DNA of 64,000 nucleotides from Amoeboaphelidium protococcarum X5 (lineage: Eukaryota > Fungi > Aphelidiomycota): NCBI GenBank assembly GCA_023515725.1, contig JALDTO010000246.1, positions 219,680-283,679 of the forward strand. The letters are read 5' to 3'. Numbering within the stretch: the first letter of the stretch is position 1; each line of letters opens with the position of its first letter. Position numbers and translations under genes: made by a program. The notes under the pieces were generated by a model that had not been told where the DNA came from, searched no databases, and saw nothing but the letters and a program-made list of their open reading frames with translations. This document shows positions 30,733-52,447 of this stretch, piece by piece.

Positions 30733-31164
30733 CTCTTGATATAGTAATAATGATATATTATAACGGTAAATGCCAAAGATTGAGGTTATGCAACGTGGCG
30801 GCCCAATGGAAAGTGACGTACAATGGCTGTCGCTGTATCGATAAAAAGAATTTGTCTTCTCAAACGCGTTGTTTCGACTAAGTTACGTCTGGTCCTCGCT
30901 GTGATTGCAGAAATTTGACTCCTTAATCATGTTCGGTTGATTAAGGTTGCCGATTGATGGTGGACGCCTGACTTTTATTCGCGTGTGTATTCCATCGTGT
31001 TACTCAATCACACGCGTGTTTCAATAGCAGTAAAAGTGATCTTGTTTGCTTATGCCGCATCATTATTTAAAGTGGCATGTTATGAGGAGAAGGTGCAAAG
31101 TAGAAACTGTCAGCAAAATTTTAAATAAATATAATTTAGAAAAGAAAACAGATACCAAAGTATT

Positions 31165-34065
31165 TCATACAAAACGAGGATATGCAGCAAGAGTGCCTGT
31201 GCCAACAACCTTCATTGACTTATCAGCCTTGTCTTTTTGATGCATCTTTTGCTCATTAGCCGCTACATCATAATTATTTTCCCGCAGCCAATACAGCTAT
31301 GAAATCTTCTTCTTCTTGTTATAGCTGCATACATATATTCTACCCCTGCGTCTAGTAGCAAGTTCAGATCCAGGGCAAGGTGTCAGCAGTGAAAGTTTTA
31401 CATTACTTTTAAATGACTGAATAGCCTGGCTAGAGCCGCAGTGCGCAATCTCGATAAAGTTCTTGTGTGTGGCGATGATTTACTCATTGTCAATAACCAA
31501 AACACGGTTGGGAGCCAAATATTGACACTTGTCTTCATCTTTACCCAAGTCAACTGCGCTCAGTGTTCCCCAAATGAATTTATCAGCAAACTGAGCGCCA
31601 ATACGCCCATCAAATAATCTGCCGTCAGACGCGAGTAATCGGCTCATCGCACCATAAGTCCCGAGGTACGCAACATCATTCTGCTAAGGTTTAATCTGGG
31701 CAGTCTTCTTTGGTTGCATACTCTTTATAGTGCTGTACCACGACGGATTCTCAGTCGTCTTCCCATTGAGACTGTTTTAAGATTTAGCTACATCTTCTTT
31801 AGCATTTTAAGGAATTTAAATGGAGCCAATCCAACGATTCTATCCTTTGTCTTTAAGAACTTCTTTCGCCTGCTTTGTAAACTCTTCCAAGACTTGAATC
31901 TCACTAACCTGACTACTCTCAAAGTCAATAATGTTAGCTTCGCCTTCATACGCGACAAACAACTTGGTCACAAACTGACCATCATGATATATCGAGAAAC
32001 TTTTTGGAGTCTCTGGTAGCCAGAATGACTTGACTTTCATAAACTTCAAATAAGGCAACTTGGCCCATTCAAGAACAGTAATCTCATTTCTAAACAGTAC
32101 GCCCATGTAACAGGTAGCTTATGTCCTCGTCACAACAAAGTTTAGAGAATCACGGGTATCCACAATCTTCTAATAATCTACAGACCAGAAGCTCGGTCCA
32201 GAGCCGCCATTTCTCAACTGCTCCGTGTCACCACCCAAGTCATATAGCGAGTCAACATCGTCAAATCCGGGACTCTGTGACTTGTTAATCTCTTCAATGC
32301 CAAATAGAAATCTCACCAATTTCTTCATACTGCTCAAATTGTAGCTTCTAATCTAATTCAATCTACCACTAATGGCCATCATCACACTGTAATCCTCCAG
32401 TATTTCAATCTGCTTAAACTTTGTTCTACGCACAAGCCATCTGAGTCTCCCCACGGTGTCAGGGTAATTATACTTGGACTCTAATGACGTATCGTAGTTT
32501 TTTGAGTCATTATGACAAGTAATATCTGCAGCCAAGAGGCCATGATCACAGCCAATAAGTAGGAAGCAGTGGACAACTGGATTAATGCCAGTACGATCTT
32601 TTCCGTTCAGTACCAGCACATCTGCGCAGTTGACTTCAATCTTCAATCTCAAATCCAGAGGCACCACTTCATACAAGTTGCGCAATTTACCTTCATGTAA
32701 GAGCTACTTAGGAAGCTTTTAAGTGACATCATACAACTCTTCTCTATCAACCTCGCTGCGGTCTGCCTCAAGGTCTCCTTCACGATCGAGAGTCTTTTTG
32801 CGGAACACGCTGAGAAATGTATTACGTCTAGCTGATGGGGATATCTTTGTGACACCAAGCTAGCCACTCACACCATCCACCAACAGCCCGGAGCCAGTTC
32901 TCTGCATATCCGAATTGATAGATGCCTGCTAAGAATTTTTGGCAATCTCACTATTGGAACTCTGAGCACTCTTATTATTCTGAGACTACACGGCCAAATT
33001 GTTCTTTGACTAAGCTTTAGCACCATCAAACTACGAAAACTACTGCTCATCACCAGAGGAATCAGAGTTGTTATCTTTCTACTATTTTGCAGCAACAACA
33101 GCTCCTTATTTCGCCTAATTCTTTTTGGCGGCTGAAGCTCCAGCACTCTGAGCCTTTTTGGCATCTTTGGCAGCTCGCATCTCTTAAATTGCATTAAAAA
33201 GTATCTGACGATGCTCACCAGTAACATCTGCAGACACTTTCTACATCCACTCTGCTTACAGACTATCCTGGGCAGTCCATCGACGTTTCGGATCTTTCAC
33301 CAGACAGCCTTGAATAAAGGCAATCATAGGCTTTGACCACTTCTTCGGCTACCTCACCATCAATGTGTTGGAATCTGCGGATGGAATGAGGTAGAGAGCT
33401 CGCATTGGATGAATGTCACTCAATGGCGGATTCTTGTCAGCCAACTCAATGAGAGTTATTCCCATGGACCAGACATCAGTCTTACAATCATACATGTGCA
33501 GTGGACTATTCTCACTCATGATACACTCTGGACTCATCCAGTACGGAGTCCCTATGAACGTATGTGCACGGAATGATGTAGAGGCTGTAGTTACAGCACT
33601 GACACCAAAATCGGCCAATTTCACCTCTCCTTTCTCAGTAAGAAGCAGATTTCCACTCTTTATATCTCTATGAATTATATGTTGGTCATGCAAGTACGCT
33701 AGTCCCTTCATTGACTCAAATATCAGGTAGGAAATCTCATCTTCAGTCAGCAATCTGGGTAGATTTTTGTACAGCGAATCCACAGCCCCGCCAGAGCAAA
33801 ACTCCATACAAATCCAGAGATCATCATTGCGCACAAAATTACCCATGAATCCCACCACATTCGGATGCCTACATTCACGGATAATCTCAACTTCAAGCAG
33901 AATCTCTCTCAGCTCTTCCTCTTTGAGAGCCACCACTTTGACTGCAGTTATCCTCTTATCAGCTATCAATCGTCCCTTGTAGACGAAACCAAAATTTCCT
34001 TTACCAATAGTCTCAATCAACTCCACATGTCCCTTTGGATTCTGCAACTTTGTCACATCAAACAT
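31165..34065 (-). CDS. STE20/MAP4K (GCK) kinase with C-terminal CNH-like region (~966 aa; a short extra 3' exon is possible)
   Basis: IGKGNFG, HRDIKSGN, ADFGVS, FIGTPYWMSPE, DIHPMRAL. A possible GTATGA..CTGACAG intron lies at the 3' end. Confidence 0.88.
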
Positions 34066-42073: not shown

Positions 42074-43523
42074 ATGTCTGTGAGTATGCGGAAATTATCC
42101 AATTTACAGGAAACAGTTAATGTTTTAATGGAGGAGACTGATCAAGTTCCTGGTAATGATCCACCTCTTAGTAGAAGGTAGATCCGCATTGGGTTTGCAA
42201 TATGCGGCCTGATCAATAATTAGGACCTATGTCGTGTTTCTGAGTGCTGCACAAGATATTATAAAATAGCAAGAGAATACAGGTGTGAGCGAAGGATCTA
42301 TATTGCTGGCTGATATAATTCCATCGCTGATTGTGAAATTTGTATTTCCTCACATGATGCACCGGGTGGGCTATGACCTGAGAATATTTATATGCATCGC
42401 CCTTAGTTTTATATCTTTGCACGTAGTTGCCTGGATTCCCAACATCTGGATTAGGTTATTTGGGATAGTCCTTGCATCTATTGCTAGCGGTCTTGGAGAG
42501 ATTTCGTTTCTGTCCTTGACTTCTGCTCCGTAATTTGTAGATCGGGATGATCATACCAATCGTGAACTGCTAAGCACCATGGCTCTGTCGGGATGGTCTA
42601 CCGGAACGGGAATGGCCGGTGTTGGTGGAGCGCTGGTGTATTTGGCTCTTACTACTTGGCTCAGAGTATCGCTCACTATCACACTGGCAATTGCTAGTAT
42701 TGCACCCCTCTTCATGGCGTACTCTTACTTTATCCTTTTACGACATTGGACTGGCTCCGCATTGGATTAGACGATAGCTGGGCGAATATTAGGACTTTTG
42801 AATTTTAAACGAGCTATAGTATCATAAGCGGATTATCAAGTATTGCCGGAAGAGTAGCCACAATCGTCTGATGGAATGTACATTGTGGATGAGTAATAGT
42901 TCGTATCGACTGTATCCAATAGTAGCGGTAAACTGGCTTTAAATGAAAGGTTATTGATACTACGAATAATGTTTGTCCCGTTCATGCTGCCTCTATTTCT
43001 AGTATTTATGGCTGAGTACACCATAAACTAGGGAGTATGTCCCAACTTGCTCTACGCTTCACCATCGCCGTCTTAGGATGAAATATCTCGACTGAGAGAC
43101 GCGTATGTGTACTATTAATTCCTATACTAGATCGGTGTTCTAGTCAGTAGAAGCTCAGTGGAGTGGTTTCCCATTCGTCAGATTTGGATTCTTAGTCTAC
43201 TTCAAGTTGGCACTCTCATCTTTTTGATTTGTGAAGCCTTATTCAGATTTATTCCATCTGTATATTTGATTTACATTGTGATTCTATGGGAAGGATTGCT
43301 GGGCGGATCTACGTATGTTAATGCTTTCAATTAGATCCGATAGAGATTTGGAGCAGATCAGAATTATTCGAGCGACAGTCGCGAATTCGCAATGGCCTCC
43401 GCGGCTGTCAGTGATACGCTAGGCATCTCTTTCGCTGGGCTGATTAGTATTTTCCTGTCTCCGGCACTGTGCAAGTATCAAGTTTAACAAGGTATTGAAC
43501 TATGTAAGCTTGTGAAGTAATGA
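42074..43523 (+). CDS. BTN1: Battenin/CLN3 (BTN1) with an apparent +1 frameshift near 42221
   Basis: GLINN / TYVVFLSAA, ILLADIIPSL, ASGLGEISFL, GWSTGTGMAG, AEYTINQG, YQIGVLVSRSS, EGLLGGSTYVN. Start could be 42074, 42086 or 42128. Confidence 0.85.
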
Positions 43524-43939: not shown

Positions 43940-44717
43940 TGTGCTATCGACGAGGCAAAGGTATGTATTAGATTACAGAGCAGGTATTAAAGAAATGACT
44001 AGATCAGACGCGTTAAACAGGATAACTGTTGAATATCACTCACAAATAAAGGATAACTAAATTGGGATAGAAGAAATAGAAAAATGTTATTCAGGTGATC
44101 AAGGTTTCATGCACTGCCTGTCCCCTGTGCATTTCAGTCAAGTAGGCATGTTGTTACACACGCTCATAGGAGATATCTTAAGACTCGCGCGCATTGTCCC
44201 TTTGCAGCTGAAACAGTGACGGCCCAATCAAATCACTTTAATCTGCCGTCCCGTTTCTCGCTAACCGTCATAGGACACGCGTCCTTTTAGGTGGATGATT
44301 ACAGTTCGTTTCAGTAAAATGTCCGATCACGGAAAAGTGTTTTGGGCACAAAAAATAATGACGAAGTTTTAAGCACGATACTTCCCTACAACAGATAGTA
44401 TTAGAACTCGTAATGCGAAGCATACGTGTAATTTGAACAATTATAAGTAACTTATGTGACGTCTGTTTAGATAATGCCGCAAAGTTCTCTATTTCATTCT
44501 CCAGTGATGGAAAGTGCCAATTTCAAAGCCATCGATTTTAGATTTAAGTAATCAAGTGATGGATTATAGTAATAAGAATACTTTTCCTATATATTATGTA
44601 GTTTTTGACTTTAGAAATTTTCAAACAGTGCCAAGTAATGAAATTCAATTTCATCGTTACTAAAAGCGGCTCTTACAGCGACTAGCAAACTCCAATTACT
44701 GACTTGTTGAAAAGGCC

Positions 44718-44724
44718 TATAAAA
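44718..44724 (+). promoter_or_regulatory. TATA box upstream of Fanzor
   Basis: TATAAAA about 65 bp before ATG 44788, followed by a pyrimidine-rich leader. Confidence 0.5.
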
Positions 44725-44787
44725 GCGCCAGACAGTTCACTATTTCTTCTTCCTCTTTCTTATCTAACTTCTCATAGATAAGAAGAT

Positions 44788-47103
44788 ATGGCAAAGAAAG
44801 TAACACGTAAATGCAAACTAAATACTGTCTTGAATCTTAGCGATGGTGATAAAGAGAGATTGATACCACAGATTCGACTGAGCTCAGTGCACCTCACCTT
44901 TGCATCCCGTCTGATCTATCTCAGTCTTAATGTATGGAATGAAGCCGGCAAGGCACTACCTGAGCTATCTCATTAGCAGTATTTCGCGTCAATGCTGGAG
45001 TATCTTTGCAACTCTGCGTTTCATCGTGACAATGAACACACACGAATACTGGCTGAAACAATCGCTCCTGAAGTGCGATAGAGATTGAGGCACGAAAGCC
45101 TGATTGGTCCAAATCCTAACCTGTACGTGTTTCAAGCGCGTAAGATTATTTAAGCTATCACCTGGCATCTGACTGAAACTATATGGGTCTACTAGAAGAA
45201 GGTGATTAAAGCTTAAATGGAGGCCTTTAATGTAAAAGGCCGAAGGCTTACCGTGTTTCTATAGCTGCTCAACTCTTTGCTGACTGAAGAAGCTGTTAAC
45301 ACGATGGAACACTTTGGGGGCGAGTACTTGGAGATTAATCCCGCGACTCAGATACATTTGCCTCCTGATTACGATGCTGGTGAAGATGAGGAGACAATTG
45401 CGCAATAAGATGCTGCTATTAAGGACGAGTTGCTGCAATTGTTATAAGTTGAAGAAGTTCGGCACTTGGTCTCAATGCATCGTCACCATTTATTGGATAT
45501 TGTCACCACTTCTTTTAAAGACAGAGCTCCAAGAAGGAGATACAGTAAAAGAAAAGCATAATCTCCTAGTCAGCTGCATGGACTCATCGGTTTCAAGCGA
45601 TAGAAATCGGGTAAGATGAAGTAGCGTGATACCCATCAAACATACATGCCATCAAGAGCACACCATGCATTTCAGAATTAGGAGGGCTAGAAAGTTTTGG
45701 TCCAATATCTGATGTATTAGCGTTAAACTCTCAAGGAGCTAGGCTTGCCATCATTCAAGATTTTCCCTACTGGTACCGATGTTCCGCGCCACATCTGCTT
45801 TGACAATAAAGTTTTGGCTCAGTGGGGATTTGAACAGTATCGCCTGGGCAATCAGTTGGGGGAGGAGTCGAAAGAGGAGGAGGATCAACGGTAATGTATC
45901 CTAAGGCTTAAAGTTTTGGGTCTTTAACAGCGGATGGCTCAATCTAAAAACGTCAGTGTCAGTATCACCTCTGATGGTTTTGCGTGCTCCGTGTCTGTTT
46001 CAGATTAAGGTGGGAAAGCGTATGCAAATGAAGCTTCAGACCTGCAGAGAAAAGCACGAAGCATTGACGTGTCTCAAGTAATTGTTGGGGCTTTTGCTTT
46101 GGAAAACTGTCGGAATCTCCAACAAAGATTAGATGGCTCTCGATTGATTGGCGTTGACCCTGGTAAGAAGAACGTACTGGTGTGGGGCGACGACGCGGAC
46201 GTCGATGGTGCAATTACGCTAAAAGAAGCCAAGAAGGAGCTAAAAGAAACGGGCCACATATCTGCTGGATACTGGTAACGTCTTGCATTGACTACAGAGT
46301 CTGAAGCCCATCTGTTGCATATCAAACCAACTGAAATCACGCTGATGGAGTAAGATATGGCCTAATCAAACACTTGCCAGTAGTATCTCGATGTTTACAT
46401 CAGATATTTTGAGGACGTCTATGCCTTCTACTCAAGATCATTCCATCGTAATTGGAGATTCCGACGATTTTGCGCGACCAAGTCTGCGTTTGGTAAAGTC
46501 ATCAACATGATGTATGGCAGACCAAAGCCACCAGTGCCTAAAATCAACGATCGGCGCCGAGGTAAAGCTGCAAAGAAGAGGAAACGCGAACTGCTTAAAT
46601 CTAATGGCAAGTTTTCACCTCCAGATAAGCCTCCGGTAATTGCGCTTGGTGACGCTGGTGTGAAGCACGTGCGTGGTAATCCTCCTGTTCCGGTGAGAAA
46701 ATTCGCGTTTGAATTCAGTCGTCGGGCATTGGTAGTTATAACGCCGGAGTTCCACACTAGCAAGCAGCACTCATTATGTCATGCAGATCTTCAATGGGAG
46801 CATGAAGTGGTGATGAGGTGCCGACACAAGAAGGCAAAGAAGATACTGCCTGGTCGTCGCCGGGCTTAAACTGTCTGCATCAAAGCTGATGGTCCAGAAA
46901 TCCTATCGTACGAATGTCCTGATCGTTTTAACCGAAGAGTCCAATCAAGATTTGGAGTTTGCCCAAACTGCCAAAACACTGGATGTGACGTCTTTGTAGA
47001 TCGGGACGTTAATGCTTACAGGAGTATGGCTCAAATAGTCCGCCATTACGCGATGCATGGTAGCAGACCTTAATGGAATTGCCGCGCCGAAAGGCGCGCC
47101 TGA
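44788..47103 (+). CDS. Fanzor1 (TnpB/Cas12-family) RNA-guided endonuclease, 771 aa
   Basis: One frame with UAR=Gln. FKIFP..PRHICFD, SITSDGFACSV, RuvC-I IGVDPG (D457), FYSRSFHRNWRF, VIALGD, RuvC-II TPEFHTSK (E654), CPNC, RuvC-III VDRDVNA (D740), GSRP tail. Confidence 0.92.
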
Positions 47104-47244
47104 TATATACAGTAATGTTTGTCGGACAAACCGATGAAATAGACTGTAAGCGACCTGTCTCTCAACGAGGAAAAGAAACGCGTCAGAATCCTCTAAGCTG
47201 AGGCATTTCAACTGTTTCAGATTCAGAATTCTGTCATCCACCTG
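47080..47244 (+). ncRNA. Candidate Fanzor omegaRNA scaffold
   Basis: CGCGCC-GAAA-GGCGCG hairpin 47083-47098 overlapping the last codons; stem TACAGT/ACTGTA 47108-47148 enclosing GTCGG/CCGAT; CCTC/GAGG hairpin ~47190-47203. This is the usual omegaRNA position. Confidence 0.55.
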
Positions 47245-47333: not shown

Positions 47334-49134
47334 TCAGTGAGACCAGTCGATTGATAGCTGGATTGAGCGTTTCCATTTGGCAAATTTCTCTTCACGTTCT
47401 ACATCACAGTTTCATAATGGACGCGCGTAGGTCAATGGATAAAAAAATTATATATATTTATATATATAAGACTTACCTTTTTGAGACCACCTGGGACTAA
47501 AATTGTCCATAGATTGCAAAGTAACAGCGTCACTGGAAGACAACTTATCAATTTCATAAAAACCAATAGCTAGACCGGCGGCTGTCGCAGCACCCAGTGC
47601 AGTACTCTCTTTCATTTACGGTCTCTGAACTGTAATGCCAAGAATATCAGCCTGGATTTGCATCAGCACATTTGAATTACTCATACCACCATCAACACGC
47701 AAAACCGCCAGATCAAACTCATGATCATTACTATCAGCCTTCATAGCCTCCAGAATCTCACGAGTCTACAAGGCCACACCTTCCAGTAGAGCACGGCAGA
47801 TGTGTTTCCTAGTGGTGAATTGAGACAAGCCAAATAGACAGCCGCGCGAATTTGGCTTCCAATACGGAGCAAATAATCCACTCAATGCCGGTACAAATAT
47901 CACTCCTCCTGAATTCTCAACTTCACCAGCCAGTTTACTTAGTTCCTGCGGAGTGGCTACCATTTCTAAAGAATCGCGCAGCCAACTTACAGCAGCACCA
48001 CTTATAGCAATGGATCCTTCATAAGCATAACACACTTGCGCATCTCTACCCAACTTATACGCAACTGTAGTCAACAGGCCACTCTCGCTGGGAGGAGGCA
48101 CACGATCTGGGCCTGTGTTCATAAGCATAAAGCAACCAGTTCCATACGTATTCTTGGCCATTCCTTTCTAAAAGCATTTTTAACCCACAATGGCTGCTTG
48201 TTGATCGCCCAAACACCCGCTGATAACCACTCCATCCCATTCGCCATATCCACTGACGCGTCCATATACTTCACTTGAACTCTTAATCCGAGGCAGAATA
48301 CTTTCATCAACATCGAATACTCTACATATAAGTGAGATTAATCAATTAATGATGATGAAAATCATAATGTAAGGATCCATTACTGAAGCATTGTTTGAGA
48401 ATATTCGCAAGTCTGCAAATCCATAAGCATCGTACGTGATGCGTTTGTAACATCAGTCACATGTACACCACCGTTGGATTTCCCAGTCAGATTCTACAAA
48501 ATAATATAAATTTCATTTCATTACAATTAGCCAAAAGAAAAGATTACAAATATTATCCACGAGTCGACAGTTCCGACAGCAAGTCTGTGCTCATCACACG
48601 CAGACTAGACATTCCGATCATTCTTCAACAACCACTTCAATTTGACAGCACTGAAATACGTACTAAATGGGAGACCACAAATATCCACAAATTTTCGCTT
48701 GTCACCCGCTCCTTTGTCTTAAACAAGCTCATCTACCAGATCGGATGTTCTTGAGTCAAGCCATACGATTGCATTACACAGCGGTTCGCCTGTCGTTCTG
48801 TCCCAGCAGCAAAGAGTCTCGCGCTAATTAGTAATGCCAATGGCTACTACTTTGCACTTATCGCTGGTACTCTTCTGTACCTAATCGATGCACGCATTAA
48901 TGGACTTGATAATTTCTTTTGGGTCTTATTCGCACCATCTACAAAGTACTATAAAAAGATGACAAGTTTGATTAAAGTAATAATTAGATCGCGCTATGCA
49001 TTCACTTACCCTGGTTACTAGTAAATCGACGGATACTCTTGCTGATGGGATGCAACTATATTACAATATTTGTCAAAGAAGATCACTCTGGACGACGTTG
49101 TGCCATTGTCAATCGCTGCAACAACCTCAATCAT
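47334..49134 (-). CDS. GUT1: Glycerol kinase, 4 introns
   Basis: [49 protein letters not shown] introns near 47.4, 48.35, 48.5 and 48.95 kb. Confidence 0.92.
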
Positions 49135-49313
49135 TTGAACGCGGCAAAGCTTGCAGAAGTACTCAGTCAAAGTCTCAAAATGTGACTAATCTCTCTTTGG
49201 TGGAAAAAGACTGAAACAACAAGCTTTAAATCTAAAACTAATATCATTTCCAAAAATTAGTCAACTACATTAAGAATATCCTAAAGTCACACATCAGTCA
49301 TTAATCAATTTCA

Positions 49314-52257: not shown

Positions 52258-52369
52258 TGGAGGATGCGATATGGTGCGTATAGTATGCAAGAGTTATAGC
52301 TCTATAAAGACTGTTCGGATTGAAACGGAATTGATTTAATTATTTTTTTATTAAGCCATCTTTCCTGTC

Positions 52370-52447
52370 AGTCCCTCAGATTGAGCCAATTCTCAAACGA
52401 GTCCCTCAGATTGAGCCAATTCTCAAACGAGTCTCTCAGATTGAGCC
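52370..52447. repeat. 30-bp tandem repeat x2.6
   Basis: Unit AGTCCCTCAGATTGAGCCAATTCTCAAACG, near-perfect copies. Confidence 0.95.

Follow-up and report, generated by a model that had tools for sequence, protein, structure and literature searches.

A Fanzor1 gene in a non-autonomous Tc1/mariner-type transposon of Amoeboaphelidium protococcarum and its one-sided target motif ATTA, the predicted TAM

The closest described counterpart of the element analysed here is Spu-1 of Spizellomyces punctatus, which encodes SpuFz1 (PMC3627910, PMC10432273). Spu-1 carries a lone Fanzor1 gene between TIRs with a TA duplication, lacks an internal transposase and occurs in many young copies; two conserved target bases stand 5' of its left end and form the TAM together with the TA, and its two-stem omegaRNA ends in the right TIR. 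The Amoeboaphelidium protococcarum element resembles it in each of these respects, the TAM and the omegaRNA being predicted, and SpuFz1 (PDB 8GKH, 9CEU-9CEZ) is the best structural match of its product (Z 19.2, 539 residues aligned). The two proteins nevertheless share only ~14% identity and differ in length (771 aa against ~635 aa), in TAM (predicted ATTA against CATA), in the first RuvC motif (DPG against DPN), and in the His that serves as first zinc ligand, the insertion and the use of code 6 in the aphelid protein. A Tc1 family with matching TIRs can be identified in A. protococcarum, whereas none was found for Spu-1, and exact-end patterns, which are blind to more diverged ghosts, revealed no ghost (omegaRNA-only) elements with these ends.

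Mariner-carried Fanzor1 genes with TA duplications and mariner TIRs have also been described as PUl-1/PUl-4 and PGv-1, for which, as in the aphelid, both autonomous and Fanzor-only forms occur (PMC3627910). These come from different hosts, while the aphelid Fanzors ride two transposon types in one species, one with Tc1 ends and one a pogo element with its own transposase. GtFz1 and PpFz1 (PMC11423790) have the same Fanzor1 fold (Z 14.7-17.6) and the TDG, DPG and shifted-E motifs at 10-16% identity, and their measured TAMs are TTAA and ATN. In the restorative homing of TnpB in IS200/605 and IS607 elements (PMC13565253), as in the mechanism proposed below, a TAM and a flank-derived guide serve to rebuild an empty site; according to a 2026 review, homing has been demonstrated for prokaryotic TnpB/IscB only and for no Fanzor (PMC13565253).

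The stretch analysed here (the window) comprises 64,000 nt of contig JALDTO010000246.1 of A. protococcarum X5, an aphelid that parasitises algae. It contains a 2,851-bp element (44298-47148) that is filled by a Fanzor1 gene (44788-47103, + strand) and holds no transposase. The element termini read TA-CAGT... on the left and ...ACTG-TA on the right. The left TIR, of Tc1/mariner type (44300-44325, +), matches 22-23 of 28 positions of the perfect TIR of L036, a 1,186-bp Tc1 (DDE_3) element of the same genome, and the right TIR with the right TA (47123-47148, +) is degenerate, with 20 of 28 matches. A non-coding 5' leader (44326-44787, +), as read from the sequence, contains a TATA-like box at ~44718-44725 that may act as the promoter; no transposase remnant was found in it, nor any Tc1 similarity outside the TIR. 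The element is a non-autonomous Tc1/mariner-type transposon with Fanzor1 as its sole gene. It lies between genes at 42213-43523 (+) and 47412-49260 (-), whose translations, on visual inspection, resemble a membrane protein of the CLN3/battenin type and a glycerol kinase, the latter gene containing an intron. Further along the window, at 52350-52447, a 30-nt unit occurs three times in tandem.

The A. protococcarum genome is duplicated (PMC10608142), and its 23.6-Mb assembly contains 15 left ends and 14 right ends of the element, that is, ~13-15 copies, which are real since the read depth of the family is ~13-17x the single-haplotype depth. Ten copies are full-length, with mutual identity of 98.6-100%, and eight of them retain an intact frame and catalytic triad. 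Comparison of filled and empty sites confirmed the TA target-site duplication. One copy (L011, G000:C264:380401-384143) has an internal tandem duplication of ~890 bp that cuts the RuvC domain short. At 45719 and 46595 the window copy departs from the consensus of the reads (Q311 where the reads give L, and L603 where they give R), both positions being non-catalytic.

The gene comprises 771 codons from ATG to TGA and includes 14 internal TAA and 10 internal TAG codons, with no internal TGA and no frameshift, in agreement with the sequence-only reading. These codons are read as glutamine, since nearly all long ORFs of the window are open with table 6 only, the table-6 translation of 44788-47103 is identical, with no differences, to a full-length protein already public in NCBI nr (P0034), 22 of the 24 UAR codons pair with UAR or CAA/CAG in a sister subfamily of 86% identity, and UAR=Gln has been published for A. 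protococcarum (PMC5304391). UAR accounts for 48% of the glutamine codons of the gene and 56% of those of host genes (P=0.30), which agrees with the suggestion that the gene is adapted to the host code.

The same reading had proposed that the code hides the gene from standard-code mining and that the gene may therefore represent an overlooked Fanzor lineage. Neither proposal held. The nr cluster of the protein has ten members, most of them full length, annotated under MIR68_ locus tags, and a stop-free piece of the gene (46411-46866) used as query retrieves the 771-aa protein at 99% identity. Relatives also occur in standard-code organisms, namely Amoeboradix, Radiomyces and metagenomes; one of these, a 939-aa protein (P0007) on a metagenome contig (L068), has a similar two-stem 3' layout. 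The accessible part of the supplement of Saito et al. 2023 already names two proteins of Amoeboaphelidium occidentale, and a literature search found no paper naming the A. protococcarum family or mentioning Fanzor together with aphelids. What conceals the protein is its divergence (~14% identity to known members) and not the code; both the kind of element, a Spu-1-like mariner-borne Fanzor1, and the protein itself, as a database entry, were already known.

This divergence is evident from domain searches. No Pfam match was obtained at E<=0.1, either for the stop-free pieces or for the full protein, and PF07282 was not detected on the window Fanzor1, though it was on relatives; a phmmer search of the PDB with the single sequence gave no match at E<=10. 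Only profile and fold allowed the protein to be placed. A 12-sequence profile searched against the PDB ranked GtFz1 first (E 9e-4) and SpuFz1 next (E 1.7e-3), and its alignment brings the TDG, DPG and shifted-E motifs into register. An AlphaFold model was built on the nr protein P0002, from which the window copy differs at three residues (T131A, G489D, L603R), and reached pLDDT 80.7 and pTM 0.81. The best seven Foldseek matches of this model in the PDB are all Fanzor1 (SpuFz1, E=1.7e-15), and VIA Z scores are 19.2-14.7 for Fanzor1, 12.2 for CasPhi (the best non-Fanzor), 10.4 for TnpB and 9.4 for the Fanzor2 ApmFz2. The model has the enlarged-REC Fanzor1 fold, nearer to SpuFz1/GtFz1/PpFz1 than to Fanzor2 or TnpB. 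Assignment to Fanzor2, of IS607-like elements, where a short TnpB-like protein is partnered by a serine recombinase and no TSD is made, was rejected on the TA duplication, the TIRs, the length of 771 aa and the weaker structural match. Judged by profile and modelled structure, the two comparisons that the sequence-only reading had called for, the product of 44788-47103 is a Fanzor1, as had been supposed.

The 771-aa protein consists of a REC/WED part followed by RuvC and zinc-finger parts. Residues S-D-G (395-397; 45970-45978, +) align with TDG in SpuFz1 and in GtFz1, both of which have solved structures and carry this motif in their last WED strands, and D396 and G397 are nearly invariant among homologs. 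The RuvC-I catalytic residue D457 (46156-46158, +), in the motif GVDPG, is invariant and aligns with DPG of GtFz1 and DPN of SpuFz1. Homolog and profile alignments place the shifted RuvC-II glutamate, a rearrangement considered a defining feature (PMC10711439), at E654 (PEFHTSK; 46747-46749, +), six residues ahead of the first zinc ligand (E654-x6-H661-x2-C664). The RuvC-III residue D740 (DRDVN; 47005-47007, +), assigned by motif and homolog alignment, forms an RD pair at 739-740 after the zinc finger. All of these positions had been assigned from the sequence alone, and when homologs are aligned each of them proves invariant or close to it. The predicted Cys-rich zinc region needs one correction. 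Its ligands exist, in the TNB region H661-x2-C664 ... C725-x2-C728 (46768-46971, +; translation and homolog alignment), and the first is His661 and not a cysteine, so that the finger is a variant of the C4 type. Its halves are split by a long insertion, with a 60-residue spacer between the ligand pairs, and the Cys and His residues of this insertion could form a second zinc site.

The gene is under purifying selection as well as intact: dN/dS is 0.15 against the 86%-identical subfamily and ranges from 0.06 to 0.23 across three protein regions, and the catalytic triad is kept across families at 41-86% identity. These comparisons indicate that the protein has been maintained over a long residence in the host. 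Among the young copies, 18 non-synonymous and 9 synonymous variants were counted, the outcome given by neutral drift after insertion.

The transposase that might mobilise the element was sought through its TIRs. Genome-wide, the left-end pattern is found at the Fanzor left ends and at two L036 ends only. The L036 copy is frameshifted, the TIR-matching Tc1 copies among the matches listed are frameshifted or partial, and no intact TIR-matching Tc1 transposase is among the matches listed in the genome search. Three other Tc1 families (TIR match 10-18/28) and an intact pogo family, L053-L056 (10-13/28), were rejected as mobilisers. The latter (e.g. G000:C200:127296) is a young 2.0-kb family (99%) whose TIRs are perfect and whose transposase is intact, and one of its copies, L054, is inserted ~70 bp away from the right end of a Fanzor element.

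The right end of the element has the arrangement seen in Fanzor1 systems, in the form of a predicted scaffold that contains the TIR and TSD, a known Fanzor1 pattern, followed by a variable guide. The putative omegaRNA scaffold (47079-47148, +; -26.7 kcal/mol, z=-5.5) includes stem 1 (47083-47098), a short hairpin lying within the last codons of the gene, and a long stem 2 (47108-47148), which the right TIR closes together with the duplicated TA. Across eight copies, from the window family and three related families, both-sided changes occur in 4 of 12 pairs, which none of 500 shuffles matched; since the structure was derived from the same sequences, this covariation is supportive rather than independent. 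In all copies conservation stops sharply past the right TA, and the following host flank (47149-47163, +), which differs from copy to copy, would be the guide, its length of ~15 nt being set by analogy with SpuFz1 and SfAV Fz1.

At the left end the element is preceded by a one-sided target motif. AT stands ahead of the left TA at 17 of 19 independent sites (background 0.105, P=3e-15) and after the right TA at none of 20, which rejects a palindromic target preference. For one insertion in the sister strain, the empty site in the window's genome reads ATTA with a single TA, so that the AT is target DNA and the TA is duplicated; one search for an empty site gave no hit. Because the layout of Spu-1 is alike, and its CA and TA together make up the measured TAM CATA (PMC10432273), ATTA (44298-44301, +) is the predicted TAM here. 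No intact target of ATTA plus guide was found in the genome for three guides checked, two of which had no such match at <=3 mismatches. This may mean that cleavable empty sites do not persist; it is also expected from the 8-20% divergence between homeologs. The right flanks of copies L004 and L011 start with CAGTA and thus give TA-CAG-TA, which is the classic footprint of mariner excision; these copies may have re-inserted where an earlier element had excised.

Together with a copy in the opposite orientation (G000:C244:171713-174563), the window copy bounds an inversion of ~89 kb, and on the homeologous contig G000:C136 (L018) the left flank of the window copy is joined to the right flank of the other. 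At this empty site the guide matches over 19 nt and the preceding motif is AATA; with AATA in place of ATTA, the site should resist cutting. Such a change is consistent with an active nuclease but is also to be expected from homeolog divergence. Another opposed pair, L008 and L009 (G000:C245:90477-93329 and 30988-33839), lies 57 kb apart, is identical over 2,851 bp and differs from all other copies at 20 positions or more; it could stem from a short-range jump made recently, from conversion or from a second inversion.

Taken as a whole, the element is probably a Tc1-type Fanzor1 transposon that is moved in trans and restored or copied by omegaRNA-guided cutting at ATTA. The Tc1 transposase of the L036 family would move it, and transcription through the right end would yield an omegaRNA of 85-90 nt, consisting of the scaffold up to the duplicated TA and then ~15 nt of flank as guide. 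The resulting RNP would cut ATTA plus flank sequence, a combination present only at an empty allele, be it at a site of precise excision or on a homolog or homeolog of the filled chromosome. Repair templated by the filled allele would then restore or copy the element (restorative or allelic homing), and this gain would keep the nuclease under selection.

Related families bear on this mechanism. The two A. protococcarum assemblies contain at least four related Fanzor1 groups, and a 43%-identical family is autonomous, with a pogo (DDE_1) transposase and a Fanzor between different TIRs. In the sister strain (GCA_023515745.1) this pogo+Fanzor element is inserted at one and the same base in a pair of loci that are homeologous or duplicated, L051:766-5319 (JALECJ010000258.1) and L065:1766-6319 (JALECJ010000256.1), which share the same RING and tRNA-Met genes and carry the element ~40 bp downstream of tRNA-Met. 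The two elements differ at 3 of 4,554 bp, with none of these differences in the non-coding spacer (994 bp), against a divergence of 3-7% in the flanks and of 2.7% in the RING coding sequence; a third copy, at a different location, is 2.1% diverged. Identity extends 16 bp to the left and 82 bp to the right of the element, and synteny ends ~700 bp to the right. On these comparisons the simplest reading is that a break at the empty site was repaired from the filled homeolog, that is, homing; competing readings are a hot spot that received two separate insertions, gene conversion of the ordinary kind and mis-assembly. The dating of the pair is weakened by a copy in the window's strain that is also ~99.9% identical over the part compared, and the signature is a single event in another family and strain than the window's.

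Two further observations concern these families. At G000:C207:293405-302397 (L057-L059), pogo+Fanzor units lie in tandem and are partly duplicated; the assembly has a gap there, and the repeat may have been collapsed or wrongly joined. An 802-aa Fanzor1 family (41% identity; L052:2165-5440, L067:3166-6440, G000:C142:302924 and C98:1401584) has a 3.3-kb element with a covarying scaffold and no obvious matching left TIR.

The one-sided ATTA also admits the reading that the Fanzor RNP picks the insertion site, recruiting the transpososome or making the break that it uses. REC/WED would then read the TAM, possibly aided by a few matching seed bases, and every copy would land at ATTA in one orientation. 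The bias is present even among copies of 99.7-99.9% identity, which leaves little time for selection against other insertions; ATTA occurs again at both independent sites of the pogo-carried family with its different TIRs, and transposase-only Tc1 and pogo elements of the genome have no ATTA target. However, the pogo family contributes those two independent sites only, Spu-1 has the same one-sided motif, so that the pattern itself is known, and an asymmetric transpososome acting on unlike TIRs could yield a one-sided target without any Fanzor. Shared short prefixes are a little more frequent among the right flanks than among random ATTA sites (P 0.001-0.03), but this test was post hoc with several statistics, and P rises to ~0.03-0.09 without the CAGTA pair, a possible excision footprint. 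Site choice by the RNP is considered unlikely.

It is improbable, too, that the Fanzor is an intact but silent or non-cutting passenger that binds, regulates or idles while the Tc1 transposase alone spreads the element. No copy of the window family was seen on both homeologs, nor was homing observed in that family, and no biological role has been proven for Fanzors (PMC10432273); the low dN/dS in all three regions, the conserved triad and the covarying scaffold nevertheless speak against such a passenger. The probability of a decayed pseudogene with real stops, or of some other protein family, is close to nil: the 24 in-frame TAA/TAG codons and the empty Pfam and phmmer searches could suggest it, and it is refuted by the host code, the interchange of UAR and CAR, the fold and the eight intact copies.

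As a tool, the protein adds another divergent Fanzor1, for which ATTA is the predicted TAM and whose scaffold is short (~70 nt); it can be assayed directly, and its use is real but incremental. As to biology, in the duplicated genome of this culturable aphelid a given site can occur both with and without the insertion, and several young Fanzor families are present; with identifiable transposases as well, it makes the native role of Fanzors, in homing and in target choice, testable from sequence and in vitro. That natural RNA-guided homing copied the pogo+Fanzor element across L051 and L065, and that Fanzors impose the one-sided ATTA on two unrelated transposases, is a tentative and rather doubtful combination; if true, it would be direct genomic evidence for a role of Fanzors in their hosts.
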